Position numbers and translations under genes: made by a program. The notes below the pieces were generated by a model. It saw nothing but the letters and a program-made list of their open reading frames with translations. It searched no databases and was not told where the DNA came from. 32,000 bases of DNA, taken from assembly GCA_054661495.1 (NCBI GenBank), contig BAAFSQ010000041.1:24131-56130 (forward strand), in the 5' to 3' direction. Each line of letters starts with the position of its first letter. Positions within the stretch are counted from its first letter, which is position 1. The stretch is from Zygophlyctis sp. KS116 (Eukaryota; Fungi; Chytridiomycota). This document shows positions 1,336-26,217 of the stretch, in pieces.

Positions 1336-4300
1336 TTATTCTCTATATCGAATCACAATAACTTGTCCGAATCCTGCGATGTAAATCAATGAGTCGTTTA
1401 CAGGGAGATCCAGTGATGAGAGTGAGAGATGAGAAGGTATTGGAAAAATGCCAGTCAATGTTGGATTTTCTATCAATCTACCAGCTTCCCTTAATTTCCA
1501 TACTCGTAATAAATTATCCGCAGTTAATGTTACTAAATTTAGCCCATTGTGTGATATTTTCCAGAATCTTATTATTGAGCCTTCATGCGGTAATGAGCAG
1601 AGACGTTTTCTAGTGGGAGATAAAGCAAGTATATTTATGAAGCCGTTTTTTACATCAATCATACGTTCGCTTAAATGATCTATTGCACTCCTTGTAGTAC
1701 TTCCATCGTAAAAAAGATACTGAGTTTCCTTATCTATCCAAAAACTACTCAAGTTTTCGGCAGACTTAAAACCAACTTTAGATGACCAATACATGTTATC
1801 AACTATAATAGAATCTGATAAGAGCAGCGCACAGGATATTTTACTATTTCGTTCAAAGATTAGCATATCTTGTAGTGCGTCCCTCTTACTATCATGTAAA
1901 AATAACTCTCTTCCAGTCCAGCAGTTTAAGACAACAGCAGACTTGTCAATTCTAATACAAACTCTTTCAAAATCGGTAAATATTGGGTTTCGGGGTATAA
2001 ATGAAACTTGTGCCTTTGAATATAGCTCAGTCAGTTCCCATGTTCCATTAGCGTTTGTAAATTTCCAACATGTAAACATATCGTCCGAAATCGCACCAAG
2101 CCAATAGAGTTTTCGTGCCTTACAATACTGTATCCATATCTGACTATATACGTTTGAATCTGGGTTTTTCAAAAGAATCTTTTGCAAGTATAAAGAGTAC
2201 ACTACCAAGTTTGAATCAGAAATCCCAAAAATAATCGCTTCATTTGGATCAAAAGCACAAATATCAAATTTGAATTCCAAAGACAGAGATTGTGTTACTT
2301 CTCCCCCCTTCCACAATACAATATTCCCTTTCTCGTCCAATGACAGTGCATCATATATTGTAGAATCATCCTTTAAAATTCTGGTCGAATTACAGTATAG
2401 TAATATAATATTTGATCCATTATGAGGATTGACTGAATGCTTCTTGTTCTTTTTAGCCATAATTGATGAATTTATATCACACATCATAATTGTTGTTTCG
2501 GCCGCTAAGAAAATTCTTTCTTTGCCCCTTGAGCTTGCAGTACATATTGAACTCAATTTTTGGCCCATTGAAGCGGTTGGAATCTTGTCGATAAGTCTTC
2601 CGCTATGAATATGAAATACATATATTTCTCCATTTAGAGACGTGCAGTAAAGCATGGATTCATCAATGGAGAATGAAATATCCTCAAAATGCAGGCCATC
2701 TGTTTTGATCAAGGAAATCCGCGAATGATTGTCGATTTTCCAAATCATAATATTCAAATCAGCCAAACTAGCAGCAAACATATCCTTGCTGACGGAAAAA
2801 CAGGCTGTGGAATTTTCTTTCAGATCATTGCATTTAAAACGACAAATTTCGGACATTGTGAAAGCGCCGAGGATAATCGCACCACCAAAACTCTCGGAAA
2901 GAATCGCAACTTTGATACCATCATTTGATTTAGCCAAAATCCGATCGCATCTATGAAGCCTTTGAAATGTTTTTGATGAGCCTATTGACTTGTTTTCCTT
3001 TTCAGTGAATCCAGAAAAGGAGACAAACTCTAGAGCCTTATTGTCGAGGTTATTTCTCCAAAGTCCGGATTTATCATTTGAAAAAAATATATCGGATACG
3101 AATCCTGAACCCGGGATTCTTACAATAAGCTTTTTGGATAAGAGAGAAAAGATTGTTATTTCACCCGATGCACTGGAGTACGCAATCTTGTCAGAAGGAG
3201 GCAAATTAAATGCGCAATGTGCTATTTCACCTACAGGAAATTGAGACCCCAGGATCACATCAATTTTATGGTATGAATCAATATCCCACGCATTCACAGA
3301 TCCATCATCTGAAACGGATATACAGCATTTACCCAAGGCTCTTAATGGCAACGCTGTTACAAAGATGATTCTGGAAGAATGATTTCCCATAGTTAGCCTA
3401 TCAGGAGTATCGGATTGCAAAGATGTAGTAATGATTGAAGAGGTAATGATGTCTGTATGCCTTTGAAACTCCATTGCATATTCTTTAACTAAAGAACATG
3501 AACTATCCGGCAAACTGATTGCTAGACAAAACGATAGATCAGGAAAACGGCGAAAAATATCATAGTTTCTTTCGACAAATAAAGAAAAATGATTGAGTCG
3601 GTTTCGAGATATTTCATCAGCTTGTATGGCAGCGATCTTTCTTGATTGTGAAAAGAAAAACTTGAGATAGCTTCCAGAACCATTTTTAAACATCAACTGA
3701 ATAAACGACAAAGAGCATAAGACTTGAGTAAGTGTGCTAGCTTTGACTTCAGTATCTAGAAAATGAAATAATATGTCTTGAGCGCGATTTAAGTCCGATC
3801 CATTCCACACATCTAGTTTACTTGGATCACATTGACCCCAAAAAAAGTTTGCTATTCGTTCATTGAACCGTTTAGCTAAATGATCTTCCATCAAGTAGCG
3901 GTTTTTGATGTACTCAGCAAGCACGTTACTGAACAATACGAGCCTTCCAGATGGCTTGCGAATCAGCAAATATTCAATTTTGTGATATATAAAGATCCAT
4001 TCCATCTGATCAATCTTGAGTATATTCACGATTTCGCTTTCTAGAGTACCATTTTTTGAAAAATAAATAAGAAGAAATATTTCGCTCAAAATTTTGTTAA
4101 AGCGGCAAGATATACCACTTATGCAGTAATCTAAAAGTCCAAAAGTTGTGTCTGGTAGAGAATCAACAATTTCAGCAATATCAGACGAGCTCTTTGCTGC
4201 CAATATAGCTGCAGATAGTTTTAAAAACAATATTTGATCCCCCTGCTTATTTGAAACAATTCTGGAAAGTTGGGTTTCCTCAGCTTGCGGAACCTTTGTT

Positions 4301-7300
4301 GACAAAAATTCCATACTTTCCTGTCTATTTAAACTTTGAATGGGCATAAATATGGAGTTTTCAAATCGTGCTTCCATATCCCGATAAAATGCTTCTTTGG
4401 AACTAGATGAGACAACAAAGCATATATTTTTCCAAGTTTCACTATTGAGATCTCTGACCTGTGGGATCCATGAGTAAATGGGTCCTTCAATACATTGTAA
4501 TTTGTGAATATCATCGATAATTATCAGTATCCTAAAGCCCAAAAATGAAACTTTTTCTAAAAGATGTAAATAGTCATCCCAATAATTATTTCCCATTTTT
4601 CCAAAATGTATTTGCCGATCTTGCAGGTTCTGTAATAGTTGATAACAAAAAGTTTGCGCAATCCCCGAAACATCATTAGAATCATATGAAGCATCCATTA
4701 AATTATTCAACACAATGTACTTTCCAGAATATTTTTGAATAAGAGTTTTCAAAATTGTCGTTTTGCCTTTCCCAATCTCTTCGCTAAACAAACAAAATAT
4801 CTTTGATGGATTGGGATGGTGATGGTATTCTTGGGAGTCCAAAAAGTCATCGATTTGTTCCAGAATTTTTTTAGAAGATGGCAAACAAACGATAGAGGAA
4901 TCTTCGACCATTTTACATTTTGAATTCAATTGCATCCACTGTCTTAATTCATTCATAAGTTTAGTCCCAAATGCATCCATTTTGTTTAGGATCACTTTAT
5001 TATCTTCAATATGGGAAAAACTGCATGTATATTGAATATTCTTGAAAGACAAAGCCCGGACTTCATTTTTGAGAACTAAAAGATTTCTATCTTCGATTTC
5101 ATCAGTATTTTCAAAAACCCATTGATAAGCCTTTGGCACTGAACGAAGAAATGAATTATCACGTATAAACACTAGTGGCTGCACATTCATATTTTCCAAG
5201 GTTTGAATTAATCTTCTCCATAGTAACAGACTATTCTTATCGTTTTTCTCCAACACGCCGCCAAAAATTAATATATGTAAATTAGAGCGCCGAATAAGAT
5301 TGTCCAGAGTGGAGTGAATATCTTCGTCATCCAAGGCTGTAAGTTTTTCAAATGAGATTTCATATAACTGAGCACTTATACCCCGCTCTTCTAATTCCGT
5401 CCTTAATTTAGGGAACTCCAACATAATCCAATTTTTCTCATTATAAGTGTCAATCGTAGAAAACACTGTTATAGTGAAAAATGTAGATATTCCTTGCGAA
5501 GAATTATTCTGCTTTTGAGCAGTAACGTTTTGTGAAATACCCAAGATATTTTTGGGGGATAATCTTAATCCCATCTCGACTGCAGAATCAATTGAGGCTG
5601 CTGGTACTTCAATTCGAGACATAGAATCATCAGTGATAGAATTGCCAAAAACAATTTCTCGGATATTCTGGTAAGTGTCCGAAGTGGAAAATCGAACATT
5701 CTCTCCATTCACTGATGTTTTAAGATTTGTAGGCTTGAAATAAATGAACACAGATGGTATATTTAGAGATGGAATCAGACCATTTCCAAGTACCATATTC
5801 CTTATCTCTAGAATAGTTTTATTCCTATCAAATGATTGTGTATAAAAGCATTGAATCGAATCTGCCGAAATCTTATGCTGTAGTACATTATCAATTTGCG
5901 AACAGTGCAAAAGCGTTTTAAAATCGAATAGTCCCGCATCAAAGGACTTACAAAGGCGAGAATCGGTGCATAAGAATAACTCTAAAGATTGTAGATTTTT
6001 CGAATCAGTGAAGTAGTGATCAGCCCTTAATGGATGCAGCATTCCTAGTATTTCTTGCCGTTTTGTTTTATTTTGAAGTGTTAATAACCCAAGCCAATAT
6101 TCGCATGACACTTTATTCATTAATATAGACCAAAAGTAATCAGATAAAATGATTTCGTCTTCTTTTAAATGCCGAGCGTCTACATATTGCAATTCTTTAA
6201 TGAGTGTTAAATATGTAGAGAAGGGTATTTTATAATCTGATCTACAGCTAGCGGCCCAATTTTCCTGCGGGATAGCTGATGACCGTAGATGAAGTTTTAG
6301 TGTATTTTTCCAGAGATCCAAATATGTGGTCTTTGTAATTCTGTCAGCCGAAATGTTTAAATTTTGCAAGGTGTTAATAAATTTTTTCCAGTTACTTTCG
6401 AATACAGCATCTATTTCTTCTTCAATCAAGGAGTTGCTTATTTGACGAGTATAAATTCCGGAAATGATCATTTTTTTAATGTGTGGGAACGTGAGCTTCT
6501 TTTTACTACACTCTACGTATAATCGATGAACCAAAGATAAATCAAATTCATCATAGCTTATATTCCCTTCAGAAATTTTGAGCATAGAAGACAAAATATC
6601 AAAATGGGATTTTAAAATGACCCCAAAAAATAAAGCATTTCCTTCCTTCGCCTCTGGTGAGTTAGATAACTGCTCAAGATGCTTTTCGTAATTGTCACTA
6701 GTATTTAGAGTATAATAAATTACGTTTCCATATCCTCAAGAAAATCATTTGAGCATATAATATTAGCAAATATGTCATTTGAAAGTAGATACTGCATTTG
6801 ATATGGGCATATAAACCAAATTTTACATTGACCGCTGATATTTCGAAACCTTCGTACTAGAGTGGGAATTATATTAATCCATTGGCTATCTACCAAGACA
6901 TATACCCAATCACCACTCACTATAGCAGATTCAATTTTTTCAATCCATTTCCCTAAAGAATTATTTAATTTAATTACCATGCTTGTCTTCATCAGTTAAG
7001 CTGATCAGCATAACGTGATCTTCCTCTTTCATTTTAAAAACAGCATTTAAAAATGAAATAATCCCCATCGGCCTAAAAGTAACTATTAATATAATGCTTT
7101 GAGAACGATCTGATAAAAACTGCATCCAGCTTTCAACAGTACCCCGCTTTACCAAAGAATTTGATATTAAATCAGATACATGATTAAAAGACTTTTGATC
7201 ACACTTTCCCATCGAAAAAAATTGAAATAATGCTTTTTCAAAATTAGTAAATTTACGATTGAGCTTTTCAATCGCAGTAGCATATTTTTTAGGATTTTCC

Positions 7301-10300
7301 AAATATAATTTCAGTGCAAGAATAAGAGGGAACTCCTGATGCTTATTAGGTAGGCATTTTAAAATCTGAGATTTAAAAATTAAGAGAGCTCACCTGAGCG
7401 TATTCTTCTTTAGGCGTATTGGTTCGACGCCTTAGGACTGTTAATAGAGCACCTTCGTAATCTGTTGTTATAAAACCATCAAACAAAAGTTTTCGTATCC
7501 CAATCACCAGCGAAATATATTGAAAATCAAAAGAAGTAAACCTATTAACCAGTTCCTTTAAAATAATAGCGAGGGATTCAAGGAGAATATTATCGATATT
7601 TTGATCTATTGTAGTCAGTGATTTTTGTAAAGATTCATCAAAAATCTTTAGTAAATACCCAATTTGTATCTGATTTAGTTTTTTTAGGTCCTTCATATCA
7701 CTTATATCCCTAAAAACAGATGCAAAGAATTTTGTTAATTTAATGAAAGAATCATGCATATATTTGCTTTCCACCTCCAGATTTACAAGAGTCGACAGTT
7801 GACTATCTTTCTGAAATGTCCTTCTGTTTAAACGAATAATTTCATGACGCAATTCATCCTTTATATTTTGAGTTAAAGACAGATTTAAAAGATGGTCCAT
7901 AATTTTTTCAAATAGTTTTCCTCTTTTCTCGACTGATAAATTGAGCAATATTGCTGGTAAATTTAATCATTAAAATAATTACTTTGTTCTTTTTTCAGCT
8001 TATAGTAATTTCCTCCTTTAGTAAAAAATAAATAGTCGAAAATAACAGCTTCTAAAAGATCATTATCATTTGAAAAATTAAAAATTGTTAATGGAACATT
8101 TGAAATTTTAGAAATATGACAATGATTTGTAATCAAAATCAATCCAACTTTTCCATCATCTATACTTTGAAAAGATGAATGGTTGAGCGTCTCTAACATC
8201 ATACTTTCGTCACAAATTTGAATCACCTGTATTTCCTGATTTAATAAGTTCAGTAAGTTAGTATGGGGCATAGAATAGCCAGCGCATTTCATTAAATGGA
8301 TAAAAATGTTATCAGGATCTATAAATATCTGTTTTTGATTATGTAATAGAATCTGATCAAAGTGATAAACTTTCACAAGCTCTAGACTTTGTGATATTTG
8401 GCTAGAGTTTTCTTTGATGTCAAATTGATCAGAAAAACTATTTGACATGGGATATATAGCTTTGACTTTATCACATATTAAAGAAACTAGAGAAGTCCTA
8501 TCAGAATGTTGGAAACATTTGAGAGCGGTCTTGAATAAAGATTGCATAAATATATCACCAATGAAGCAGCTGCTCTGACACCTGAGCTCCTCTATTCTAT
8601 GAAGAACCGAATCCTTAAGAGCCCAGAGAGACTTAAATGCAATCACATCAAATTGAACCTTCTTTCCCATAAGTATCCCATACTCATAGGATGATATCAG
8701 CTTCACCAAATTCGCCAAACTTAAAATCAGGGAGTTCTTGGAGTAATCCGCAGTGGAAGGCTTACACTTTTTAATAGAGTAAATTTCCGCATTCTCGACC
8801 AATTGTAAACGCAAATCTATTTCCAGTACCTCAGATAAACGACCATGACGAGTTTGTTTTCTCATCTTATCCACAAGCGGATTTATACACCCCTTCCTAT
8901 GAGCTTTTTCAACGAGTATTTCATGTACGTGTTTCAGGCATAGTAATTCTTTTGAGGTAGTAGTACAAGTGATAGACATAATCCGAAGCCTTAAAGATGC
9001 ATTTTTACCCATTAATCGCTTGGCAGTATCTTGGCGATGTCCGGCAGCTAAAGCTTCCCGTTCTTGAAATTCTGAAAGAAATCTTTCAATTTGTAGGAAA
9101 ATATAATTAGAAAGTTCAAAGTTGACAAGTTCTTCCAGTGAAGGATTATCGTGCCGCTCCAAGCGAATGTATTCTGGAATTTTTCTTAAAAAAATATTAT
9201 GACGTTTGTACACTCTAAACGATTAAAAATAAAATAATACTGAAGCCCTTCATATTCCATCAATTCTTTCAGATATGCAGCTTTGATCGGCGTGAAATCT
9301 AAATGAGAAGCTACAACCATTTGTTGATAAAATCCTCTCCAGTCAAAATTTCTATCTTTTGGGAGAAAAACAAGCCCCCAACCTTTTCTGTACGCCATAT
9401 ATTTCCAAAAAAGTTGATTATTTATCATATTATTCCATTTTTTACAAGTTTGCATCGCCCTTACAAGTACTTTATAATCAAGATAACATAGAACTCTCAT
9501 AGTTAGTTCATAAGGTAAGCATCCCAAGATATCAACATATAAGCAAAGATATTCATTTTCAACCTGCCTCACAAATTGGTCAAGATCATATCCTAACTCC
9601 TGCTTAATAATTCCAGATGCTCGTTCATCTCCAAATTCAATTTTTGATATTTCTTCGCACATTTTTTTCGGATCAGATAAAATAAATGCCAAAGGATTTT
9701 CTGCATGAGTTGTAGATCCAATAATCATTGAAGAAACTTTTAAAATTTTCATGATGTTTGGTCCATGGAACTTAGCTGATAGTTCATCTTGAATCTTTTC
9801 GACACTTATAGATGGAATCTGTTTTTTTAAATACTTTTGTTAGTTTTTTAAATTACCTTGAAAGTATCTATAATATACTCAAACGACCAAAATTCCGGAA
9901 AACTGTCAAAGTTTGATATCCATGCAGTATCATATAATGATTTTTTTTGTCTTGAATTCTTATATGCTTCATCTTTTTGAGTACGAATTTGTGATGAAAG
10001 TCTGGAAATTTCTCTTATTATGATGATGGCATCCTTGATAAGATACGCAGCTCTACAGCCTTGATACGGAGCCAGTGCAGACGCTGCAACCATTCTGTTA
10101 TCTACATAAAGTTACGGTCTGTATTATTACCATAAAACGCAGAGCGTTGGAACAAATTGGGATAGTTTTCATCTTTCAGGCTGGATCCGAAGTCAACATT
10201 TTTAATTTTTTTCCAATCTGTATTGACAATCTTTAAATTAAAGATTAAATCCTACCACATCATAAATATTTGGAACAGCCATAGTCTGGTTAATTCTGAA

Positions 10301-13300
10301 TAGAATGTGTAGGATGGACTTTGCCTCGTTATTGATGGGATTATCTTCTGAGATTCTAAGCAAAGTCTGCAAATCATCCATTTTAAGCGTCATGAATAAT
10401 AACCTTACATTCTCTAACAAGTTATCAACTTTTTTTTCCTTTTCAAATAATTTCTTCTTCACATCTTCAAAATGAGAAATGCTTTTCTGATATTCCAAGT
10501 AAGAATCATTCATTTGAACATCTTCGAAAGAAAAATCTTCAGACCCGATATAAAAAGCTCGCTGAAACCACTGCCGATAATACAGTTCATCTTGCTGATT
10601 ATCAATCTGGTTGAATATGCTATCTTCTTTAAGAGCTTCATCAATTATCCTTAATTTACCAACTTTAAATTTCTTCTGGTTGACAAAGGATAATATTTTA
10701 ATTTCCAATTCCCTACTTTTCTTCTGTAAAATATCTAGTTGGATTTTTTCTTCTGTTTTTTTAGTTTTAGCCATACAAATCCGTCGAATTTTTGCGGTAA
10801 TTTGAGCATTCGAGCTCATATGCAGCTTCAGCCATCGATATTGAACTGCAGAACTTATCCATTGGCTAAGACCCTTCGCTGCTACACTTAAATTCACCAT
10901 ACGATCAGTACAAAAGTTGGGCTGCTCCGTGTATTTCTGCAAACGTTCAACTTTACTTTTTGTAAGAATACTTTCATCAAAATTAGCAATCTTTTGAATG
11001 AAAGTGTTATTAATTATAATTTTTTTAGCTTCATGCCATGTTGGATTTTTATCGAAGATTATACAAATAGCATCGGCTATCTGCCCAATCATAGGAGGAG
11101 GAATATTGTAGCTTTTTAGCTCGTCCATATCGCACTTCCTAATCGTATGCAAGAATTGAGCACTCGCCTCAAACTGCTCCTTAGCGGTATTGATAGCAGC
11201 TTTAAGAGCAGTTTCTTCCTTTTCATATACACTATCGAAGAATTCTTGTTCTCGATCGGACAAATAAGTCGCTATTCTTTCCCTTTCTATATTTATAGAG
11301 TTAAGCTGAATTTTCATATTCCTAATTTCGTTCATAATGTGATCGATTTGTTTGGGCAATACTTCAGACTCAGACCTCCATTCATTGCGCATCTTTTCAA
11401 ATTCGAAAAGCTCATTATTTATCATTTCCAGATTTGATTCTAAATGCATAATTTGATTAGTGACTGCATAATGAGTTTGCTTGAGATCTTTAGAAAGGAT
11501 AAACAGAAAATCTTCAAATAAATGCCGTGAAAGCAGCTCTTTTGGTAACCTTTTTTTATCACGAAATGATATTGCAGAGCAAAAGACTGTGGCACAAAGC
11601 TTTGAAAGAGCATTTGAATCAATCCAGTCATAATTCATCTTTTCTTGAAAATACGATAATCCAGCTTTAAAAAGGTCATTTTCATCATATTCCTTAACTT
11701 GATAGATATAAAAATATATAGGGATACGATTAAAAAAGGCTAAAATTTAGATAAATAGGTTGATTACATATTTGGCTGATGGAATCGCAATTTCTTTTGT
11801 CCAGCGCTATTACAATATTTAAGTTTTTCGAAATGCGATCCTTGTAATGAATGATTAAATCCTGATCAGGAATTAACGCCAGTTCAGGTTGTTCTTTTTT
11901 CATCTCGCTTTTCATTTTCCCCAATAATTCTTCTAGCTCATTATCAGTCCATAATTCCTGAAATCGGATCCCATTTACAAAGGTCTGTAGAATTCCCCAA
12001 AATTGTAATGTAGTCTTATCGAATTGACAAATGAGTATATGAGCCAAGAGTTCTTGGTTGTAAATTACAGCGTCGATAATCAGTCGTTTCAAAAATGCAT
12101 TCCATTTGGCAATATCAAATGATTCTGCGCTTAATAAAAATTTGCGGATTTTCATGCCTAGATCAGCTGCTGCAATCTGAGTTACTTCGTTAGAAATATC
12201 CAGATTTGGATATCCATAAATCATTGCAAAACCATTTCTAGAAAGTAATGTTCTTTTAAGTCTTAAAATCTGATCCTTTATGTCCAGAAAGTGCCAGATA
12301 TTAGATTTAATGTTTTGGGATGCTCTTGATAATAGGCCTCTACTTTCAAGATACTGAAGATGCGATTTCGACTTTGGATATTCTGTTTGAAGAAATCGGG
12401 AACAAATACCATTCATGATAGTGTCAAAAGATAAATGATCATTTTCACTTATGCGGTCTCTAAATATTCTTTCTGATTCGAATATCCAAATATTTATCAA
12501 GTCCGAATTAGATGTAGACGATACATTCAGAACCTGTAATCGCTTGACAAGTATTCGTAGTAAGTTAGGACTAAATAGCTTTAATGGACAAGAAGATGAA
12601 GCAGCTATCTGTAAAATATACTTTTGACACAATTCTTTGGATGCTTCCATTAGGTTTCTTAGGATTTGATTGGTTCCAGGATGTTTCAGAATTAAGTCGG
12701 TTTGAGCAGAACTAAGCATTTCCTGGAAATTTCTATCGTCTGCATTTAAGAATATCGGAGTACAGAAATGGAGGAGCCTAGAAAGAACCGGTATGTCGCA
12801 ACTTTTAAATGTGTCAGCTCCTAAAAATAGTGAAAAGTTAGAGACTTCCCGAAAACTTACAGATGAGCTCCAATAGCCCTGCCTGTCGACCAAACTATAG
12901 AGAAATTCCCCAAGCATACTTTCGGTACTATTAAAGGAAAATTGTATATCATCAACGAAAACAATGAGTTTTTTTTCAAATGAAGGAATATATCGGCCAT
13001 TCTTTTCATTTAGTACCAACACTTTGTTCAAAAACCTCTGAATATATTGACCTGAGGATGCTGGAGAATCTGCAGTCGACACATTAATAAAAGAATCACC
13101 AAGACTATCAAGGGATTTGAGAGTAATATGACTTTTCCCCGTGCCTATTGGACCAACCAAAACTATATTCCGATTATTTTGCAAAAATGATGTTGAATGA
13201 AACAGAACTTTGGCTTCAATTGAATTGTTCAAAATATTTGCTTGCCAGCGGTTCGTTTCGAATGTGTAATCAACTTCGAATAAGTCCAGAGAATTTTGAG

Positions 13301-16300
13301 AATTTAGAAGTATAAATAGACTAGAATTATAATTAATTGATCCGATTAGATTCAAAAATTTATATCGAAATGAAGCTCGATCATTCATAAATACTGCTGG
13401 ATAAATAGCCCATAAAATACAATATTGAATGACGTTTTCTAATACTTCTGAAACATTACACTGTATTCGATGAATTGATTGCTTTAAATATGTAGATAAA
13501 TAAGAGAATAAAGATCTTATCAAGTTCTTCTCTTTCAAAACAGTCTTTGTATCAACAAGAAGAATATTTATTCCTTGCAGATAAGATTTGAGTAGGGGCA
13601 TAATTGAAGGTATGAATTTCATATTAGCGAAATTATCATTCTCTAAACTTGAGCGCCAAATGAATAATTCTTTACTCCAGGACCAGTCATACTGAAAATG
13701 TACCAAATTGAAAAAGCCAACTGTAGACGGAGATAAAACTTGTATGTCTTCCATTTCCAAAATAATTCTGGTGTTTTCCCCAACACTCAACTGTTTACCA
13801 CCAAGTGAAATCAGACCTCCATCCAAAAGAGAGTTGATCATCTCAAAAACCCAGGAATGAAAATTTCCATCGAAAACTGCGATAGAAATTTGAGATTGAT
13901 CGGCTAAAACCGTTTCTAGCAAGCTAGGAAAATATTTCCCGTGATCAAAATCTCCAACTAATGCCGCTGGGCCTAAGCCAGAAGGATTTAGATAAAACGT
14001 CTTTGCACGAATTACTGCAGAAATTTTCTGGATATTATGCGTCTTCCCAGCTCCTTGCTCGCCATAAAAAAGCAAATTCTGGCCTGATTTCAGTAAAAAT
14101 GATAGATTTTCGACAATTGAATCATCTATAGACCCAGATATTTCTTCAGGAATTTTGAAGGCAGGAAAAATAGATCTGAGAGCTAAATTAAACGCATCTT
14201 TGTCTGACTCTAATAATCTTGGAATGTACATAAAGCATAGCGCCCGAACAATTATGTCAATTTCACTGAAATTAGAGTTGATTCGTAATCGGCCTGCCAA
14301 TCGAATAACAGATTTTAGTGACCGCGAGGTAAAATCATAGAACACAGTACTCGGCAATACATTCTGAAGGCGAGTAAAAAGCTGGCCGAGTTGATTCCCA
14401 AGATCTGAAAAATGTACAAAATTATCCATAAGTAGAAAAATGCTTGCTAATGCAAAAATATTTGGTTTTGAGAGCATGATTTTCCTCATATTTGAATCAA
14501 ATAATATCTGTAAGTCTCTATTTTGAGTCTTATTTGAAAGTGTAATAAAACAGGGGAATTTTACTCCGTCAGTCAGACGCATATTTCTTCCCAAAAAAGG
14601 TACATTTAACCCTTTTTTACAACGGAGAATCTCTTTCAAAGACTTGAGACTTTGAAAAATGGCGTCGATACATTCTTTGGTTAAAAGATCGAGATTTTGA
14701 AATCTTATATAGCATCCGCTCATTGCTAAACCAATCATAATCCTGTTTAGTACTTTGGCGGTAATATTAGCACCGCAGGGAACCGAGATAAGAAAGTTTC
14801 CTGTCATTATGCTGAATGCTTGAAAGCTTTGCCATGCAAAAGCATTATCCGTACATTGAAGGTATAGATTATGTTTACCTTCAGATGCTAACCAAATATT
14901 CTGAGATAATTTAGATGGGCAAAAAATTCGAGAAGAATATATTTGTTCACCTTGATATTCAAAATTATAGCAGCATTTGTGCAGAAATTGTCGTACTAAA
15001 AGAACAGAGCTATTTCGATCAAATTCATATTTTGGAAAACTTATCCATAAAAAGTCTTTTAAGCTAGAGACCGATTCTTTAATCAATAATTGTTCAAAAT
15101 CTCTGCATTCAAGTTCGTAAAGCAGAAAATATTTGATTGCATTTTTTTCAGCGTCATTATCTGAATTTAACTGTTCCGAAAGCATGGCCACTGTTTGCAT
15201 AGTTTGTTGCATGAATAATCTTATCGCTCTGGGATTTTTTATAATGATAGTTTCGAGAAGTTTTGTCCGAATAGTTTGTGCTATAAGAAGGCAGATTTGC
15301 TTTGGTAAATATTTTGATAATTTACGGTATATTTCAGCCCATAAGATATTTGAGCTGAATTCCTTTTCATTTATATATTCAAGGTTTGAGATGAACATAG
15401 ACTTCAAGCTGGATTTTAGCTCTGAATCGAGAGCTGCCAACCATGTTTCCGCACTTGTACTTTTTGTGCTGATCGGGTTATCAAGCTTAACCACTTCATT
15501 ATTAGTCCCGATAACTGCCATAATAGCAGTTGTTTCTGTCGATTGAACATTGACATTATTGAAATTGAAAATACTATAGATAAAACATACTTAAGATTTA
15601 CCGCAGAAAATAAGGTTGCAGCTTTCTTGGTTCTTTGGCTACAGATACGATATCTATCAGTTCCTCGTCCGAAACAAAGAACAGCCGAGGAAAAACTAGT
15701 CGTTTATTATCAAGCCACCCTTGAAGATTGGCTGTGACCATTCTTAAACTTTGCAGCATATCCATAAGGGACGATTCTAAATCTGGTGCTACTTCAATCA
15801 TCATAGACAATTTTTTATGTGTCTGAGCGCTAAGTATAATCGACTTAAATGCGGTTTCAATTCTTTCGTATCTTCGTAGTTCACCTGATAACTGGATCCT
15901 CACTTCTCCACAGAGGAAAAATCTACATACGCTGATAATGGTAGCCTGAACAGCCTCCCAGTTCTTCAAAACCCTTTTGGCCATTTCAAGTTTATCTTCG
16001 AGATCCTTGAAAAGAGCTTGAAACTTTTCTAATCCCATCGTGCCTTGCATATTGTTTACAGCTAATAGATCTGATTCGAGCACACTCAGATTTCGTTCAA
16101 ATGACCTTACAACGCTAAACTTTGATGCATCTTTAAAGATTTCTACAACAAGATTTGAATATCGATTAGAAATTTCTGATAATGATATTATAATATCTCT
16201 TTCCTTATTTGCTGCGCCCTCGACTTCTTGAATAGCTGACTGAAGCTGAAAAAAATCTTTATAGGTGGTAGACCTGACTACAAGAATATATCCGTGAATA

Positions 16301-19222
16301 TCCGGCTTAAACTTAACACCGATGCTTTTACAAATAGACACCCAGTGCCACTCCTTTAAAGTAAAAAATGCGAAGTATTTACCTGCAAAATCGGATTTTT
16401 GAGCGATTTTATGATGGGTAGGTCCCGTCCTAGAAAAGATTCAAGAGTTTCCTTTGAACTACTAACTAGCCAGCAGTCGCATAAATCGGACTGGTCGAAA
16501 ATACTAATAAATTTTGCCCCTTCTTTTTCAATTTCATCGACATCAATAGAGTAGAGGGGCTTCTCCATCCAATCACGCAATTTATTCCGTGACACCATTA
16601 ATACCTGCACTAGAATGTTACGAGATTTCATCAGTGTCCATATTCGACGCATTTCTTCTGTTCCAGGAACATTCTCGAGAAGGTCAACTTTTTTGGATAT
16701 TATATTTGCAATGTCTGCAGCGTTTGAAATATGCTTTATGATATAGTTGAGAGAAGTAACAATCTGCTCTTCAGACAAAAAATCAGATTGATGCTTTACA
16801 ACTTCCACTGGACCCCCAATCAGAATTGTGGGAATTTTTGGCTTAGGAGAACTAAATAATTTGTTCATAGCAGTCTCGACATTTGTCCAAAGATTCATAA
16901 ACATTTGAATTTCTCTTCCTATACCCTGGCGTAACTTTTCAAGAGAGTCAATAACCTGCTTCTTTTTCAAATCCATGAATGTATAGAGTTTCGAAAGTCC
17001 AGTACAACTCGAATAAAATTTTTCAACTTCAGTATCCTCCAAAGACCACAATTTGGAATCTAAATACGCCTTTATCAAAATATTGTCCTTGATTTGATCT
17101 ATAATGTTAGGAATTGACCTTTCCAAATCTTTCACCATATAAGATGCCTTTTTAGTTTGTTCAAATTTGTTTGGCTCTACTATACTAAAAAATCGATCGT
17201 ATGAGCTCAGAAGATTCCGCACTCTGAGATTTAAATAATCCTTTGTCCGTATTTCTTGAAGATTCCGCGATTTTGCTATAGCAAAATCAATCGAATTAGA
17301 AACATGCGATATGTTGACCATAAATATCCCCCTGTTGGTGTTGATAAGCTTTATTCGAAAACCACTACCAATTTTTTTAAGCTCCTCAAATTGAGAATCA
17401 CAGAAATCAAAGTATTCTTGAGCTACCAATCCCTCATTGGGCGTTTTGTAGCATATTTCTAAAGTTGGGAGTACAGTCGCATTAAGTTTTAACAAATATG
17501 CATCCAAATTAGATAAATTTTCGCTAATCATTTCAGTATAAAGGGCCTCAATGCAACGAAAGTCAGCCGGTTGACATTCAAAGACCTTATCTGGTAATAC
17601 GCATTCCATTGGCTGAGTCCATCTTTTCAAGTTCTTTAAAAGTTGCGCACCTAATAAATGCAGATTTTGCTTAAAAATGATTTTATAATCTCCCTGTAAG
17701 GTTGTTGCAAGATCATCGAATTCAAACTCTGCGCCATCTTTTATCAATACACAATCTATTTGGATTTTGAGTTTTTGAGTGATGAATAAACGATAAAAAT
17801 GCATTATGCTTTCATTAATGAGAGGTGAAAGCAAAGACTTTGAAACAATTGACAAAAGTATTCCAGTTCGTAGAAATACTTCGCGACACTTTTTTGATTC
17901 ATGTCCCTCAGTAGATATCAATTTAGCCCTTTGTTTTAGCGTAAGATTGGTATTTTCCGTATTCTCTTTAATCCCAAAATATGATAAAATTTTGGCAAAT
18001 GTCTCTTCCACATTCGTTCTAATCATTTTTGTAATATTTGACTGGAAACGGTCATATTCAGAGTTAGCCTCTTTTAATATTCCCATTGGATCAAATGATC
18101 TCTCTTTATCAAGAACTTTTGTTTGTTGAAATATTTGCTGAAATTGTTGTTTAAGTTCCAAAATACAAGTTTGAATAACGCTATTAATGTAAAATCTATT
18201 GCCTTCAAACTGTTTGACAATAATTTTAAACCTTTCACATTTTTGGACATTAATACACCCCTTTATCGATATTATATTTGATGTCATAGATTTTGAAATG
18301 CCAGATAAGTCACTTATTACAGACAAAAACCTATTTTTAGTGTGTGTAGTTGTACATTTTAAAACTATTACTTGAAAGTATCCAAGCCTTTGTCTGAGAA
18401 TATATATACTGCTGCTCCAAATCCTGTAATAGTTCATTTAAAATATTTTCTGAAACTGCAAACTTCACTCGTAACATGATTCTATTCATTAAATCACTTG
18501 ATATTCTGGTCATTTCCCCTAATATAACACTTGAAACTCTTACAATCAGAATCCTTCATCATTCTCCTAACTAACTGATGTAACACAGAATTATATTCAA
18601 ATTCATTCCTTAGATTTTCAGCAATTTGTAACCTTGAACGATATATTTTATCGTCTTCAGAAGTCAATTTTACCAATGATATCCTTTTAATGATTTTTGT
18701 TGATCCACTTTTAATCAATACAGTTGAATCATCATTAAAAATCTGCTCCACTACTCCGTTCAAACCATTTAAGCAATTTTCGAAAGGCAAATCATTATAG
18801 AAAATAACATTTTTAGATTTTGATAAGAACTCGGCATCAATGAATCCATCAATATCAAAAATAAAACAAGATTGCTGCTCTTCATTTTCCAACTTTGCAA
18901 TTGATTCTTCCATATATTCATTTTCTGTGCGATTCTCTTCTTTTGGCGCATTAAACGACGTGACGATTGGAGCAACTTGACAGGGAATCGGCGTCAACCG
19001 TTTTAGATTATTGAATGCGGGAACCTTATATTTCCTATATATTTCTCTAGTTGATATTTTGCCTGCTTTATCCAAAACCGGAATTTCAACTTTAAATATC
19101 GGCCCACTTATATCCTTCTTCTCTGCTATTAACGGCACGGGCGTAATTTGGCGTTTCTTGTATATATGTATATTCTTTGAAATAATTTTATCTAGTCTGT
19201 CATTCGCTTCTTCCCATTTCAT
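1336..19222 (-). CDS. Giant (about 5,846 aa) dynein-heavy-chain-like fusion: DHC tail/linker, AAA1-4, stalk/MTBD, F-box insert, AAA5/6, TEP1-like DUF4062-NACHT-WD40
   Basis: 13 GT-AG introns (18519-18543, 18331-18355, 16354-16382, 15574-15601, 11740-11767, 10231-10255, 10102-10130, 9834-9856, 9215-9240, 7954-7982, 7366-7393, 6953-6977, 6698-6723; 346 nt total) each restore frame; 17887-346=17541=5847 codons. Dynein motifs: NPILQEWHW, WLDNKRLVFPRLFFVSDEELIDI, GEQGAGKT, GPIGTGKS, DELKSYNIPPP..PTWHEAKK..SVAAKGLSQWI, AIVSGDWVYV. F-box: DILGCLPYELTMRVLCYLD..TCKKW..FW. TEP1-like FIRDNSFLRSVP, NACHT Walker A/B GKGKTT / IIIDDI, WD40s such as SVSDDGSVNAWD. Further stop-free in-frame introns could be hidden. 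Confidence 0.85.
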
Positions 19223-19288: not shown

Positions 19289-20085
19289 ATGTGTTTCCCA
19301 AAGCTGATTGATACAGATGGCATTATTTTACTCTTGATCGGATTAGATTCTGCAGGAAAATCATCTTTTTTAATGCGGCTTCGGAATGGATCTGGAATTC
19401 CACCCAAATCAGGTTGGGGATTCTCCGTAGATATGGTCCAGTACCAACCACCCCAGACTCACAACTCTTGGTGGAGAACGAAAGGGAAAAGGAAAATGAT
19501 AAAAATATATGATTTAGGAGGAGATCAAAAGATTAGAGGAATATGGAAAAACTATTTGGCGGAAGTATGTAGTATTTTAATTCATACTAATAGGTACATG
19601 GATGTATTTATGTTGTTGATGGGGAGAACAAAAATAGATTAGCAGAGTCAAAAGATGCGCTAATTGATATTTATCAAAATGCAAAACTATTAGGAAAACC
19701 TCTTTTGTTGTACTTGGATTATATTCTAATCTATTATAGAGCTGTAAATCACAAAGGCGATATCAATACTCAAGAGATTTTCAATGAAATGAATCTAAGC
19801 TCTATATTTACACATGAATCAATTATAGAAAAATCTCTAAGAATTCAACCTTGTGATGTAAGTTTCTATCCTCGGACGGAACCACATATTGATCCAAGGA
19901 TCAGGGAGGGATTTAAGTGGATTGTAGACTCGGTTCAGCAACAGTCAAAAATTCTTGACTTAAGGAGAAAGGCAGATATCAAACAAGAACTCAAAGAGAA
20001 ACTAGATAGGAAAAGAACAATAATGCCTATTATTGATAAAAACCTGAGAAGACATAGATCTAAAGTAGTACCAGAACTAATATAA
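19289..20085 (+). CDS. ARL13: ARL13-like ciliary Arf-family GTPase, short and with atypical G motifs
   Basis: GLDSAGKS P-loop; [27 protein letters not shown] matches the ARL13 signature (IRGIWKNY); EGFKWIV followed by a coiled coil. Introns at 19565-19593 and 19710-19739. Confidence 0.75.
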
Positions 20086-20097
20086 TATCATATTCTT

Positions 20098-22677
20098 TTA
20101 TACTGATGATGCAAGCTGACTTGCATCTATTCCTAGTCCAAGGGCTGTCAAAAATAAATCAACGTTAGCAAGAGCTTTGGCATCTGTGCTCATTTTTGCA
20201 GTAGCAATAATATTATCTCGAACTTCAGATACAAGCACTGTTTGCTGATCTACATTGGTCGCACAAACTGCTAATGAAGCCAAGAATTGCCAAATATAAA
20301 TCTCTCCCGGAAGGGATTCTTTATCAGATTTTTGTGCAGGAAATAGTGATGAGAAACTTCCCTGGATGGAAGAAAACAAGAAGTTGTATATATCATTCCT
20401 AATAAATAAGTAAAAATATCGTACCAAAGAGTTAAATCATTTTCATTAGGTCCTTCGGCCCCTTTTTGGAAGGCTCCTTGCCTTAATAATTCAGCTCGTG
20501 AAAGAAAGGCAGTCAAAAATGCAAGACCAATCTTGCTTGTGGCAACCCAAACCATATTGTGCCGCTCCAAAATTGTTTTCATTAGAGAATTGACCGAATC
20601 AAGACCTATTTCAGATACATAATCAACAAATGGAGGTATAACATATGCCATAAAGGTATCAATCTTTTCAATTAATGCATTTGCTGTCCTACCTCCAACT
20701 TTTCAGTACTGACGGGCAAATTAGCAATTTCAACACACTCTAAGCGACACATTAAAGTGCTAAAAAGTTTAAATTGCTGGTCAGGATTGAGATATTTTAA
20801 AACCCGCGGAATGATCCTTATACCCTTTGAATACTTCAAAAAAAATCCAAAAGCGTGAGGAAGACTGGCAAATGAACTCTTTCAATAAATACCTCAATGA
20901 AACTGGACGTGAAAGCCCCAAATTTACCCACAGTTCTTTCAATTTTTCATCAAACTTTTCATGCCAGGGAGTTAAATAAATAATAAACTTACCACTCTAA
21001 ATTTTCTTCATTTTCTTTTTCACTTCTTTTTAATGATTCCAACTCTAGAATATTATCATAAACTCTTTCAATTGAATTTAAAACACTTTTGGGCGACAGA
21101 GAGAATTCCACTTTTGATTTTTCCTATTTTCTTTACACTCTTTAATATACCTTTGAAGAAGAGAATCCAGTATCCAAAGACAATACCTGTCTTGGATTTC
21201 TTGAAGACAATACAGAAATTTTCCCGAGAGCTCCTTCCAATGACACTATTTTCTTAAAACATAATAAATTACTTGGTCCCTTAACTTCTGTAATTTTTGA
21301 CTTTCTCTTTTCAATCAGTCTTGTCATTTGCTGTTGAATTTTATTAACCCCCGAGGCCCGCTTTTTACTTTTACCAGACTCTTTAACTGGCGCCTCTTCT
21401 GGCTTTTTTGAAAAACTCGAATAAATTTCATAATAAAAATCATCCTTCATTGGATCATTCGATATCAATTGCGAAATCTGAATTTTTGCTATTAATTCCT
21501 TTTCCCATTTTGTAATAAAGACATCCTTTTTTCTTGCACTTCTCCCATCCGATTCCTTTTTATAAAAGAAACCCTGCAAATTCTTATTTTTTGACTTATC
21601 CATTCTTCTTTCTGCCTGTGAAGCTCTTTGAATTTTTTCTAAATGTACTCTATTCTTTTTCTCTTTAACATTTGTCAAATTCTCCCTAGAGTCTTTCTTG
21701 GAGTCTACTTTAATTTCCTTTGGAATCTCTTTCTGAATTTCCTTTTGATTCACTGCAGTTTCTTTAAGAGCTTCTTGAACGTTTGGCGTTACTTCCACTT
21801 TACGAATTTCTTCCACCTTTCTCTGACTTTTTAGAAGATTTTCTACATCTTCCATTGTCATCATATTTTCAATCTTTACTTGCCGCTGACCCATTGGAGC
21901 ATGTCCCATTCCTGGCATTGACATTTGCATGGAAATATGTTGTGGCATTGCCATTTGCATAGAAATAGGCGCTTGATTTGGCATTGATAGTCCAACTTGC
22001 CCCATTTGCATTTGTCCGATCGGCATTCCTCCCATTGTAATTCCTCCCATTCCCAATGGAATTTGTCCATTGTGTATTCCTCCTGCAGACAGAGACATTG
22101 GCATCCCAACAGGAGGTGCCATAGTTGCATGTTGAATATGTCCTGGATGCATCCCAGTCCAAGACTGAAGCTGCTCATGAGGTAAAAGTGTTGGTGGAAT
22201 AGATTGTGAGGCTGGCAGGTCTAAAGACAAATCCCCAAAGGTTTCATCTAAATTTTCATTTCCAGATTCTAATTCTAGTATCATAGAAATAGGCGCTTGA
22301 TTTGGCATTGATAGTCCAACTTGCCCCATTTGCATTTGTCCGATCGGCATTCCTCCCATTGTAATTCCTCCCATTCCCAATGGAATTTGTCCATTGTGTA
22401 TTCCTCCTGCAGACAGAGACATTGGCATCCCAACAGGAGGTGCCATAGTTGCATGTTGAATATGTCCTGGATGCATCCCAGTCCAAGACTGAAGCTGCTC
22501 ATGAGGTAAAAGTGTTGGTGGAATAGATTGTGAGGCTGGCAGGTCTAAAGACAAATCCCCAAAGGTTTCATCTAAATTTTCATTTCCAGATTCTAATTCT
22601 TGTATCTGATCTTCCAAGTCATTCTCATATCTAGACTCCAAAAGTGCGTCTAAATCGTCCAATTCCTCCAAATTCAT
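20098..22677 (-). CDS. PAT1: Pat1 mRNA decapping activator / P-body scaffold
   Basis: N-terminal ENLDETFG; Pro/Met/Gln-rich region; EKELIAKIQISQL..DPMKDDFYYEIY; SLEGALGKIS..RNPRQVL; IERVYDNILELE; KGIRIIPR; YIWQFLASLA..QQTVLVSEVRD..NVDLFLTALGL. Introns at 21246-21272 (27 nt, in-frame), 21124-21150, 20965-20992 (ends TG), 20865-20892, 20664-20692 and 20399-20424. Start taken as the ATG at 22677. Confidence 0.9.
21958..22605. repeat. 324-bp in-frame tandem duplication within PAT1
   Basis: 21958-22281 and 22282-22605 are identical as read, except one base near the junction (22277 a vs 22601 t); 108 aa are duplicated. Confidence 0.95.
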
Positions 22678-22752
22678 AACTTTTATTAGGAAATAAAATG
22701 CGAATAAATATGGAATAAGAAACACGCTCTTAGTTAGACGCGAAATTTTAAA

Positions 22753-24664: not shown

Positions 24665-26217
24665 CTATTTTTTGCCCATCATACTGAAAGAATTCTTTGA
24701 TTTTGAATGAGCTTGTCTCTCAATTTCCTTGACATATTTATCTGGAACTCCCAATCCACGAAGCTCTTGAATTTTCCTTTCCTTAATACTATCAATCTTT
24801 TTCTTTTGTTCCAGTCGTTTTTGGGCCAAATGAACTCCTTCTGCAAAGAAATCCTCACGTTCACGGCGACGAACAACCTCTTTTTCACGGATTTGGGCCT
24901 AGAATTAATTGAGACTTTTAATACCTTGACTTCCAGTGCATATTTCTTATTCCTTTCAGCAGCTTCGATTTCTTCCTTTTTTAATTTTTCTTCTAGAGCT
25001 TTTTGACGAGCCAAATTCTCATAAAACTCTTGACGCATTTTATGTGCTTCAACAGCGATCGCATATTCTCTAGCTTCCTGTTGCTTAATTCTTTCTTCAC
25101 GAAGTTCTTTTTCTTGTGAAGCATGTTTTTCAGCAGCGTCCTTCTCTTTTCTTCTCCATTCTCTTTCATACGCCTCGTAAGCTCTTTGAACTCGAAGAGC
25201 ATTTTGTTGAGCATTCTTATCAGTCATCTAAAACAATAAGTTTATTTTAAAATACCTTTTTTTGAGCAATTCTTAGACGAGCAAGCTCCTTTTCACGATC
25301 TTCCTTTTTCTGTTTTGCCAACTGATCAAGTTCTTCTTCTCTCTTTTCCTTGTCTAAAATATATTGTAAAACTTTTCGATCTTCCTCTTCTTCTGTCAAT
25401 TTTTGTAATTTTTTTCTTTCAATCAGTTCTTGATTTGCTACGACTACCGCTTCCATTAAAGACTTTTGAGCGCTTATTTTATTCATTTTCTCCCTAACTT
25501 CTGCTTCTGCAGTGTCTTGCAATGCCTTTAACATAATTTTGGTTTCCTGATCTTTTTTATCCTGCTCTAATAACAATAGTTCCTGTCTTTCCGTAATCTG
25601 TTGTCTAATTTTAGCGGCACCATTTTTCAATTCTTGCATTCTCACCTTTTCCTTTTCTTCAATTTTCTTTAATTCATTCACTCTTTCTAGCTCTGCCATT
25701 GCATCCAACCTTGCATCTTCATCCTTTTTCTCTTTTTGAATAAATTTCTTTTCTGCAACCTGTAGATCTCTTATAGAAACGCATTTCGCGTACAACATGA
25801 GTTCATTTAAATGTTTAATTTCATCTTCTTGCTCTTCCAATTGTAATTGAGCTTTTGCTAATAAATAATTTGATTTATCCTTTGCTTCTTGTTCTAATTC
25901 AGAGAGTTTAGCATTAGCAGTTCTCTCATGATCATAAAGTTCCATTTTTTCCTTTCGTACTTTAGCAGCTTCTGATAACTTTGATCTTTCAACTGCATTA
26001 TCTTCAGACTGTTTTCTTAATTCAGAAGAGTTCATATAAACCGATGCATTCTATTTTTCTTAATATTTTAGATTACCTTGATCTTTAAAAGATCATCAGA
26101 ATTTATAATTGCACTTGTAGTTTTTTTAAATTTAGACTGCGAATGTGGCACTAAAGTTCTAATATTATCTCTAGTAATAACAGTTATAGGTTTATCTCTT
26201 TTAAGAGTCTTTGACAT
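24665..26217 (-). CDS. CFAP45: Cilia- and flagella-associated protein 45 (trichohyalin-plectin homology coiled coil)
   Basis: ITVITRDNIRTLVP, EEQEDEIKHLNELMLYAKCVSIRDLQVAEK, EKELARLR, AYEAYEREWRRKEK, LRGLGVPDKY. Introns at 26051-26076, 25228-25255 and 24899-24924; ATG at 26217, TAG at 24665. Confidence 0.9.

Follow-up and report, generated by a model that had tools for sequence, protein, structure and literature searches.

Positions 1336-19222 of a 32,000-nucleotide stretch of DNA from the chytrid fungus Zygophlyctis sp. KS116 (assembly GCA_054661495.1, contig BAAFSQ010000041.1, positions 24,131 to 56,130; here called the window) almost certainly hold a single gene for a dynein heavy chain of class 10, read on the minus strand. 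Judged by its sequence, it is a further, very diverged member of that class. The class, and the fusion it represents, have been known since 2016. The present analysis adds an interpretation for two parts of class 10 that had been left without explanation. One appears to begin with an F-box; the other appears to be a module of the STAND type (signal transduction ATPases with numerous domains) that resembles TEP1 and Apaf-1 and contains a TIR-like domain.

Along the minus strand, long open blocks nearly touch one another from 19270 to 1339, and every change of frame is bridged by a frame-keeping GT..AG intron of 23-29 nucleotides. When each exon is read in its own phase, a single stop-free frame of 14 exons and 13 introns results. 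It runs from an ATG at 19222 to a stop codon at 1336-1338 and has a coding length of 17,538 nucleotides, or 5,846 codons. The introns, all on the minus strand like the other features of the gene described below, lie at 18543-18519, 18355-18331, 16382-16354 and 15601-15574 (introns 1-4); at 11767-11740, 10255-10231, 10130-10102 and 9856-9834 (introns 5-8); and at 9240-9215, 7982-7954, 7393-7366, 6977-6953 and 6723-6698 (introns 9-13). They are rich in A+T (68-88%) and mostly follow the pattern GTAA...(T/A)AG. The split codons at all junctions are sense codons, and there are no internal stops. A few junctions offer an alternative in-frame site, such as 9856-9819 (38 nucleotides).

The frame and the split codons were checked exon by exon, as were the matches of the gene to databases, and not on the joined protein. 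In this way the 5,846-residue frame and the 13 canonical introns proposed in a first-pass annotation of the window were reproduced exactly. That annotation had also placed the C-terminal dynein part and a NACHT-WD40 module in one exon. This holds as well: 6697-1336 contains, in one open frame, a remnant of the dynein C-sequence, a DUF4062 domain, a NACHT-like P-loop and WD40 repeats.

Class-10 dynein heavy chains were defined by Kollmar (2016, Mol Biol Evol 33:3249, PMC5100056) and occur only in Chytridiomycota and Neocallimastigomycota. They have a long, unalignable "unique region" at the usual place of AAA5, and a C-terminal WD40 tail of about 1,500 residues. Kollmar argued from the exon structure for a fusion and not an annotation artefact, and manual annotation gave a single gene (PMC5100056). 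The window gene shares with the class its tail, linker, AAA1-4, stalk, insert at the AAA5 site, WD40 tail of about 1,500 residues and restriction to chytrids. The C-terminal part of the motor and the WD40 tail also occupy one exon in both. Where a single exon from AAA5 to the C-terminus is described for the class (PMC5100056), the window gene is interrupted by four tiny introns on the way from the AAA5 position to the C-sequence.

Orthologs were sought by comparing the first 1,070 residues of the last exon with 1.84 billion representative sequences. Four proteins of 6,161-6,579 residues were found, with the match placed near residue 5,000. They are GenBank models from Gorgonomyces haynaldii, Spizellomyces sp. 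'palustris', Phlyctochytrium arcticum and Borealophlyctis nickersoniae, which belong to four orders of Chytridiomycetes. All are annotated as hypothetical proteins, the Gorgonomyces one being 6,161 residues long. Split models from Batrachochytrium dendrobatidis and two metagenomic fragments came from the same search. Neocallimastigomycota left out, the full-length matches were all from Chytridiomycetes and from these four orders.

From 18047 to about 1450 of the window, each of the four giant proteins is collinear with the gene: tail and linker, ring and stalk, F-box exon and unique region, then exon 13 and the whole last exon follow in order. Ortholog residues run on unbroken over the two introns beside the F-box exon; in the Phlyctochytrium protein, for instance, residues 2872-3454, 3450-3650 and 3646-3953 correspond to window positions 11644-9845, 9836-9234 and 9222-8305. 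Coding conservation in the F-box exon reaches upstream of its sole internal ATG, at 9752. Closer relatives are found on two contigs from one metagenome (L012 and L013), which keep the order of exons 10-14. Their introns of 21-33 nucleotides lie at the same codon positions as in the window, and the intron sequences are unrelated.

With an open frame, collinear orthologs, kept intron positions and conservation that extends upstream of the ATG at 9752, the locus is best read, by a wide margin, as one gene. The earlier claim of one gene finds its support in the four full-length models and in the continuity of ortholog residues across the F-box-flanking introns.

In a tree of the AAA1 module, the window gene falls into one clade with the four giant chytrid proteins (support 97/93), apart from six dyneins of the same genome. 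For Kollmar's own named sequences, the B. dendrobatidis locus of the same architecture serves as a substitute in this comparison with the class. Compared with its class-10 orthologs, the window copy has a shorter tail (5,846 residues in all against 6,161-6,579), and it alone has lost the Walker A motif of AAA1. The genome assembly comprises 12.7 Mb in 1,175 contigs, and no paralogs of 7984-9213 or 5101-6696 were found in it.

Some further observations concern the relatives. The contig L013 (ena:ERZ27280207:k141_1408815), the closest relative of the last exon with 38-53% identity, is broken within the homologous exon by one in-frame stop (1188-1190), with aligned sequence before and after it. 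The stop could be an assembly error, a polymorphism or gene decay in that lineage. In B. dendrobatidis, the annotations (P0003, P0075, P0080, P0081 and P0082) cut the class-10 locus into hypothetical proteins of 394 to 3,611 residues. A model of 1,160 residues in the same 90% cluster has no match to the window and carries the UniRef name of a PRORP pentatricopeptide-region protein; it may be an artefact of clustering or naming.

The first-pass annotation knew of no described protein combining these parts, and held that an already described family would speak against its reading. The backbone of dynein and WD40 tail is such a family. It was already known, since the class-10 features are all present in the window gene and full-length models are public in GenBank. 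The F-box and the STAND/TIR-like reading appear to be new. The words "F-box" and "NACHT" do not occur in the main text of Kollmar's article (PMC5100056), and the literature searched yielded no description of an F-box or of DUF4062/STAND in class-10 dyneins.

The F-box lies at 9396-9524, inside exon 9 (9241-9833). It matches the Pfam families F-box-like (E value 6.6e-12; 45.4 bits, cut-off 24.3) and F-box (1.6e-10; 40.9 bits, cut-off 20.5). The same place holds an F-box in Gorgonomyces (7e-5), Spizellomyces (2.3e-6) and Phlyctochytrium (1.2e-3), and an LPxEL...W pattern is common to the window and these three of the four orthologs. The F-box named in the first-pass annotation can be regarded as real, with scores well above the Pfam thresholds and a motif kept in three orthologs. 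The unique region of class 10 appears, from these comparisons, to begin with a conserved F-box, a feature that seems not to have been described. A position inside the stalk was considered and rejected. The F-box follows the microtubule-binding domain by about 430 residues; it is past the stalk, where the insert in place of AAA5 begins.

After the F-box exon, the class-specific unique region continues through exons 10-12 (6978-9214), which are conserved with the orthologs and with L012 and L013. The whole interval from stalk to AAA6 remnant, 6978-9833 (about 920 residues), has no match to a dynein family and is conserved only with the chytrid giants. No Pfam or PDB match was found for exons 10-12. 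For 7984-9213, an AlphaFold2 (AF2) model built on a five-row alignment was unusable, with a predicted local distance difference test score (pLDDT) of 39.7, and the ESM Atlas gave no usable match. A scan of Joint Genome Institute metagenomes with the F-box exon found generic F-box loci only, none with dynein flanks.

Binding to Skp1 was addressed with a model of a complex between residues 90-197 of exon 9 and a chytrid Skp1 that is 88% identical to the Skp1 exon of the genome itself. That exon in turn shows 88% identity to Skp1 of Powellomyces and other chytrids, its nearest relative being a chytrid sequence. The interface score (interaction prediction score from aligned errors, ipSAE) was 0.78 in all three runs, and the best of three controls reached 0.02. 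Partner pLDDT did not fall below 68, and agreement between the runs was at least 84% of contacts. The modelled interface is formed by the F-box helices and the C-terminal helices of Skp1. The docking mark applied here is reached by 51 of 78 solved complexes and by 2 of 108 mismatched pairs. Because F-box/Skp1 complexes have already been solved, a pass indicates likeness to them and not binding as such. With this reservation, binding of the F-box to Skp1 is considered probable.

A canonical F-box that is modelled on the C-terminal helices of Skp1, with WD40 repeats C-terminal to it, is also found in SCF (Skp1-cullin-F-box) receptors of the FBXW type, such as Cdc4/Fbw7. Substrate binding by the propellers of the window gene is putative by comparison with these receptors.

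The second part newly read is the tail. About 1,380 residues follow the C-sequence remnant, and contain a DUF4062 domain, a STAND NTPase and WD40 repeats. The DUF4062 domain, which is TIR-like, lies at 4927-5475 and resembles that of TEP1. Compared with the TEP1 structure 11gz, the window sequence alone gives an E value of 0.0076, a family profile 1.5e-27 and a 36-row profile 2.6e-23. Both halves of the domain align to TEP1; a match to Pfam DUF4062 as such is confined to the B. dendrobatidis ortholog (1.7e-4).

The STAND NTPase, at 3487-4926, consists of a NACHT-like domain followed by helical and winged-helix parts. Its matches to Pfam AAA_22 and ATPase_2 are both weak, and Pfam NACHT, which passes in the metagenomic protein P0001 and in Borealophlyctis, stays below threshold in the window copy. 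Walker A (GKGKT, 4759-4773) and Walker B (IIIDD, 4510-4524) are both present. An AF2 model of 3487-5256 reached a pLDDT of 84.8 and a predicted template modelling score (pTM) of 0.76. Its top match in Foldseek is ADP-bound Apaf-1 (1.3e-9; template modelling score, TM, 0.54/0.55; 496 columns), followed by MalT, Avs3 and nucleotide-binding leucine-rich-repeat receptors (NLRs). The 36-row profile also matches NLRC4 and, at 1.2e-9, the helical domain of Apaf-1 that precedes its propellers.

The C-terminal beta-propeller region, about 680 residues at 1339-3381, matches many WD40 and beta-propeller families of Pfam (E values down to 7e-10), including the second propeller of TEP1, and is collinear with the C-termini of the orthologs. 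The nearest non-dynein relatives of the module are TEP1-like proteins of amoebae. Profiles, fold model and Walker motifs agree in making the NACHT-WD40 end of the first-pass annotation a DUF4062-NACHT-WD40 module like that of TEP1. The WD40 tail of class 10 appears, on profile and model evidence, to be a STAND module of the TEP1/Apaf-1 type with a TIR-like domain, and as such also seems to be undescribed.

The order DUF4062, NACHT, Apaf-1-like helical domain and WD40 is shared with TEP1, NWD1, NWD2 and NPHP3, and class-10 orthologs have Pfam matches to NPHP3_N and NPHP3. Unlike TEP1, the window gene has no Pfam match to TROVE or vWA in any exon; dynein and F-box stand there instead. An orthology with TEP1 was rejected on the same ground, the likeness being confined to the module. 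Apaf-1 shares the predicted fold of 3487-5256 and the helical domain followed by WD40 propellers. It differs in sequence (13-14% identity) and in having a CARD, in whose place the window gene has the TIR-like domain.

DUF4062 has been described as a TIR-like NAD+-cleaving enzyme (NADase) that occurs in phage defence and is active in human TEP1, where the catalytic residue is E1008 (bioRxiv 10.64898/2026.05.01.722283). Neither dynein nor fungi are mentioned in that paper. The equivalent of E1008 is kept, in an E-x-E motif, in Gorgonomyces, Spizellomyces, Phlyctochytrium, Borealophlyctis and B. dendrobatidis, and is replaced by Asp in P0001. Because these orthologs keep the catalytic Glu of TEP1, the class-10 family may cleave NAD+. 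At this position in the window copy the alignments disagree, one giving LLLWRRL and another QTLE; the register of the helix in the AF2 model suggests that the Glu has been lost.

The dynein part itself begins with the N-terminal tail, encoded by exons 1-3 (16383-19222). It has no sequence match in Pfam or the PDB and is shorter than the tails of the orthologs, to whose residues of about 566-1374 the interval 18047-16383 aligns. The linker follows in exon 4 (15602-16353; Pfam DHC_N2, PF08393, 1.3e-37). Next come the AAA1 module (14103-14858; AAA_6, 3.1e-29) and an interval with AAA2, an AAA lid, AAA3 and a further lid (12438-14078; AAA_5, Dynein_AAA_lid, AAA_7 at 2.1e-17, DYN_lid). The stalk coiled coil and microtubule-binding domain lie at 10817-11311 (the latter at about 10817-11185; Pfam MT, 2.1e-9). 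The microtubule-binding domain is well preserved; in the PDB it matches the Chlamydomonas inner-arm chain I1-beta (8.1e-15), DNAH2 (1.2e-14) and structures of the isolated domain. For the ring, the best matches in the PDB are to axonemal heavy chains, for example DNAH2.

The motifs of AAA1 were aligned for the window gene, the four orthologs and one canonical dynein of the same genome. In the window copy, QCTDNAFAWQ (14829-14858) stands in the position of Walker A and RFQNLDLL (14682-14705) in that of Walker B. The acidic pair of Walker B (DE) is lost in all five class-10 sequences compared, and Walker A (GPAGTGKT) in the window copy only. The dynein had been called degenerate in the first-pass annotation, and AAA1 fits this description in all five sequences. 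Because Walker B is lost, together with Walker A in the window copy, AAA1 of class 10 is predicted to be unable to hydrolyse ATP, and the protein is, by its motifs, not a motor. The Walker A motifs of AAA2 (GEQGAGKT, 14040-14063) and AAA3 (GPIGTGKS, 13131-13154) are both kept. A dead AAA1 with these P-loops fits a static scaffold that may bind nucleotides.

A comparable case in principle is DNAHX, or DNHD1, a heavy chain that has lineage-specific insertions and in which the ATPase motifs of AAA1 are poorly conserved; a non-motile role has been proposed for it (Chai et al., bioRxiv 2025, PMC11785096). Both have a degenerate AAA1 and are presumed not to move. Unlike class 10, DNAHX is described in the abstract of that preprint with insertions only, and with neither an F-box nor a STAND-WD40 tail. 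No evidence was found for orthology between DNAHX and the window gene.

Besides two divergent dynein heavy chains, the genome has genes for about a dozen canonical ones. Because of these dozen canonical chains, the organism can be taken to be flagellated. The second divergent heavy chain lies on the minus strand of another contig (C213:1-10000, L008), in open reading frames at 2679-5783, 5780-7417 and 7555-8946. It matches DHC_N2 (7e-60), AAA_6 with only 105 bits, the lid and AAA_7, and its branch is as long as that of the window gene. This dynein may belong to class 17, the other chytrid-specific class mentioned by Kollmar (PMC5100056).

Behind the unique region, remnants of the dynein motor are traced mainly through the orthologs. 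Exon 13 (6724-6952) aligns to residues 4456-4515 of the Spizellomyces protein, and part of this alignment (4456-4501) overlaps the match of that protein to the Dynein_heavy D6 family at 4416-4501. Exon 13 is read as a remnant of AAA6, and the introns on both sides of it have kept their positions in L012 and L013. The start of the last exon, approximately 5500-6697, is read as a remnant of the dynein C-sequence. At the collinear place, Pfam Dynein_C matches Gorgonomyces (1.8e-9), Phlyctochytrium (1.2e-4) and B. dendrobatidis (8.9e-24). A family profile with the window copy as its first row (A2) matches residues 4019-4151 of the C-terminal domain of DNAH1 (E value 5.6e-6). A PDB sequence search of 7984-9213, 4801-6696 and the tail interval 16383-18329 gave no dynein match.

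Several observations weigh against this reading of the gene. The window copy is very diverged, with 22-25% identity to its orthologs and a branch of 3.13 substitutions per site in the AAA1 tree. AAA4 (Pfam AAA_8), present in Gorgonomyces, has no Pfam match in the window copy, and neither has AAA6. Dynein families of Pfam have no match in 7984-9213, 7394-7951 or 4801-6696 at E values up to 10, and a Dynein_C profile run over the whole genome did not match the window contig. The first-pass annotation had reported dynein domains in normal order on both sides of the F-box. Before it, the Pfam matches of the window copy do follow the normal order (DHC_N2, AAA_6, AAA_5, lid, AAA_7, DYN_lid, MT). After it, the claim fails for the window copy alone and holds for the orthologs and the family profile.

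The new parts have difficulties of their own. The Borealophlyctis model (P0008, KAJ3292987.1) lacks the second half of the F-box, a gap of about 34 residues at about 3760-3800 that is either a mis-called intron or a real loss. In contrast to FBXW receptors, the F-box of the window gene sits in the middle of a dynein of 5,846 residues, with about 2,300 residues, including the STAND NTPase, before the WD40 repeats. Human NWD1, NWD2 and NPHP3 have DUF4062 and are inactive in vitro (bioRxiv 10.64898/2026.05.01.722283), and because of this the presence of the domain does not imply activity. Continuity of splicing and transcript in Zygophlyctis sp. KS116 is deduced from sequence and comparison.

As a working model, the protein would be a static scaffold docked on microtubules, probably those of the axoneme, and not a motor. 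Axonemal docking is proposed because of the axonemal affinities of the sequence and because of Kollmar's argument from the tails (PMC5100056). The F-box would recruit Skp1 and thereby an SCF ubiquitin ligase. The STAND-WD40 end would act as a switch gated by a ligand or nucleotide, and would offer a surface for substrates or sensing, as in Apaf-1 and TEP1. In other chytrids, cleavage of NAD+ may be added to these functions. A role in breaking down the flagellum at encystment would be an attractive link. Set against the rival explanations, a scaffold of this kind is considered the probable one; the complete mechanism, with the protein as an SCF adaptor, is put forward tentatively.

A simpler role would be structural. 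The protein could be a variant axonemal dynein that is held by its tail in a position like that of the inner arms and serves as a passive strut or regulator. The WD40 region would then be a built-in docking module of the intermediate-chain type, as Kollmar at first supposed, and the F-box either vestigial or bound to Skp1 without degradation. The motor and microtubule-binding domain, with their best PDB matches to inner-arm DNAH2 and I1-beta, agree with this, as does the genome, which with a full set of about a dozen canonical heavy chains builds a flagellum. Non-motile axonemal heavy chains exist, DNAHX being an example (PMC11785096), and Kollmar, who took the tails of the new classes as a sign of an axonemal place, noted a likeness to a fusion of heavy and intermediate chain (PMC5100056). 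However, in Kollmar's analysis the WD40 region showed no homology to intermediate chains (PMC5100056). The region belongs instead to a STAND module of the TEP1/Apaf-1 type whose intact P-loop motifs suggest a switch and not a strut, and the F-box has kept its motif across three orders and docks on Skp1 in silico. The structural role is possible but rather unlikely. It is also improbable, to a greater degree, that the window copy is a decaying relic, drifting to loss and without a role of its own in a family that functions elsewhere. It alone has lost Walker A of AAA1, its TIR-like catalytic Glu is not clearly kept, its branch is very long and its C-terminal dynein domains no longer score, and in the related L013 there is the in-frame stop at 1188-1190 of the homologous exon. 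Yet a coding sequence of 17.5 kb, open over 14 exons and with all of its 13 splice sites intact although the genome is compact (12.7 Mb), is not kept by chance; the STAND domain still has both Walker motifs, AAA2 and AAA3 still have their P-loops, and the F-box and microtubule-binding domain are intact too.

It is very unlikely that the locus makes more than one product, with an internal promoter or poly(A) site giving a truncated dynein-like protein and a separate F-box-STAND-WD40 protein from the ATG at 9752, so that the single frame would be only a potential read-through. There is such an ATG, the genome is compact enough for short intergenic spacers (the ATG of a neighbouring gene is 66 nucleotides away), and the B. 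dendrobatidis annotations split the locus. Against separate products stand the four full-length single models from other chytrids and Kollmar's manual annotation, the continuity of the orthologs over both F-box-flanking junctions, the conservation upstream of the ATG, and a canonical frame-preserving intron at every junction. An immune or cell-death sensor has an equally slim chance. Here the TIR-like-STAND-WD40 part would work as an NLR, an Avs protein or a NADase sensor of the SARM1 type, directed for instance at viruses or hyperparasites, with the dynein for placement and the F-box for its own turnover. In line with it, phage defence and TEP1 both make use of DUF4062 as a TIR-like NADase (bioRxiv 10.64898/2026.05.01.722283). 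The fold and profile matches, which include Apaf-1, NLRC4, plant NLRs and bacterial Avs3, agree with it too, as does the catalytic Glu kept in five named orthologs. But the gene is single-copy, with no paralogs in its genome, and its orthologs are collinear one to one across orders, whereas fungal NLR-like genes typically form expanded repertoires with fast turnover. The window copy, moreover, may lack the catalytic Glu.

The scaffold reading can be carried further, to a version that is speculative and has a low probability. In the class-10 dyneins of chytrids at large, a dead dynein would anchor a self-contained device for demolition or signalling on the microtubules or the axoneme. A cue sensed by the WD40 propellers would lead to oligomerisation of the STAND domain, the TIR-like NADase would be switched on as in TEP1 or SARM1, and the F-box would be presented to SCF, with rapid retraction and breakdown of the flagellum at encystment as the outcome. 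The copy in the window would then be a derived form, with anchor, F-box and switch retained and the NADase centre perhaps lost.

These readings turn an orphan pseudo-dynein into concrete hypotheses. Binding to Skp1, docking on microtubules without motility, nucleotide-gated oligomerisation and NAD+ cleavage are open to test in transformable chytrids, for instance Spizellomyces punctatus. They are relevant to the way in which zoospores take their flagellum apart, and to the reuse of dynein rings as scaffolds.

Other genes lie close to the dynein gene in the window. A small GTPase gene of the Arf/Arl type (19289-20085, plus strand; Arf, 2.5e-12) starts on the strand opposite to the dynein gene and only 66 nucleotides from its ATG, which leaves an extremely short divergent promoter region between the two. 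Beyond it is a homologue of PAT1 on the minus strand (20101-22725), with open reading frames at 20101-20427, 20274-20651 and 21145-22725 that are presumably split by similar tiny introns. Farther on, also on the minus strand, two adjoining open reading frames at 24682-26035 encode trichohyalin-plectin-homology (TPH) domains (1.3e-36 and 1.8e-11) and are probably one gene.

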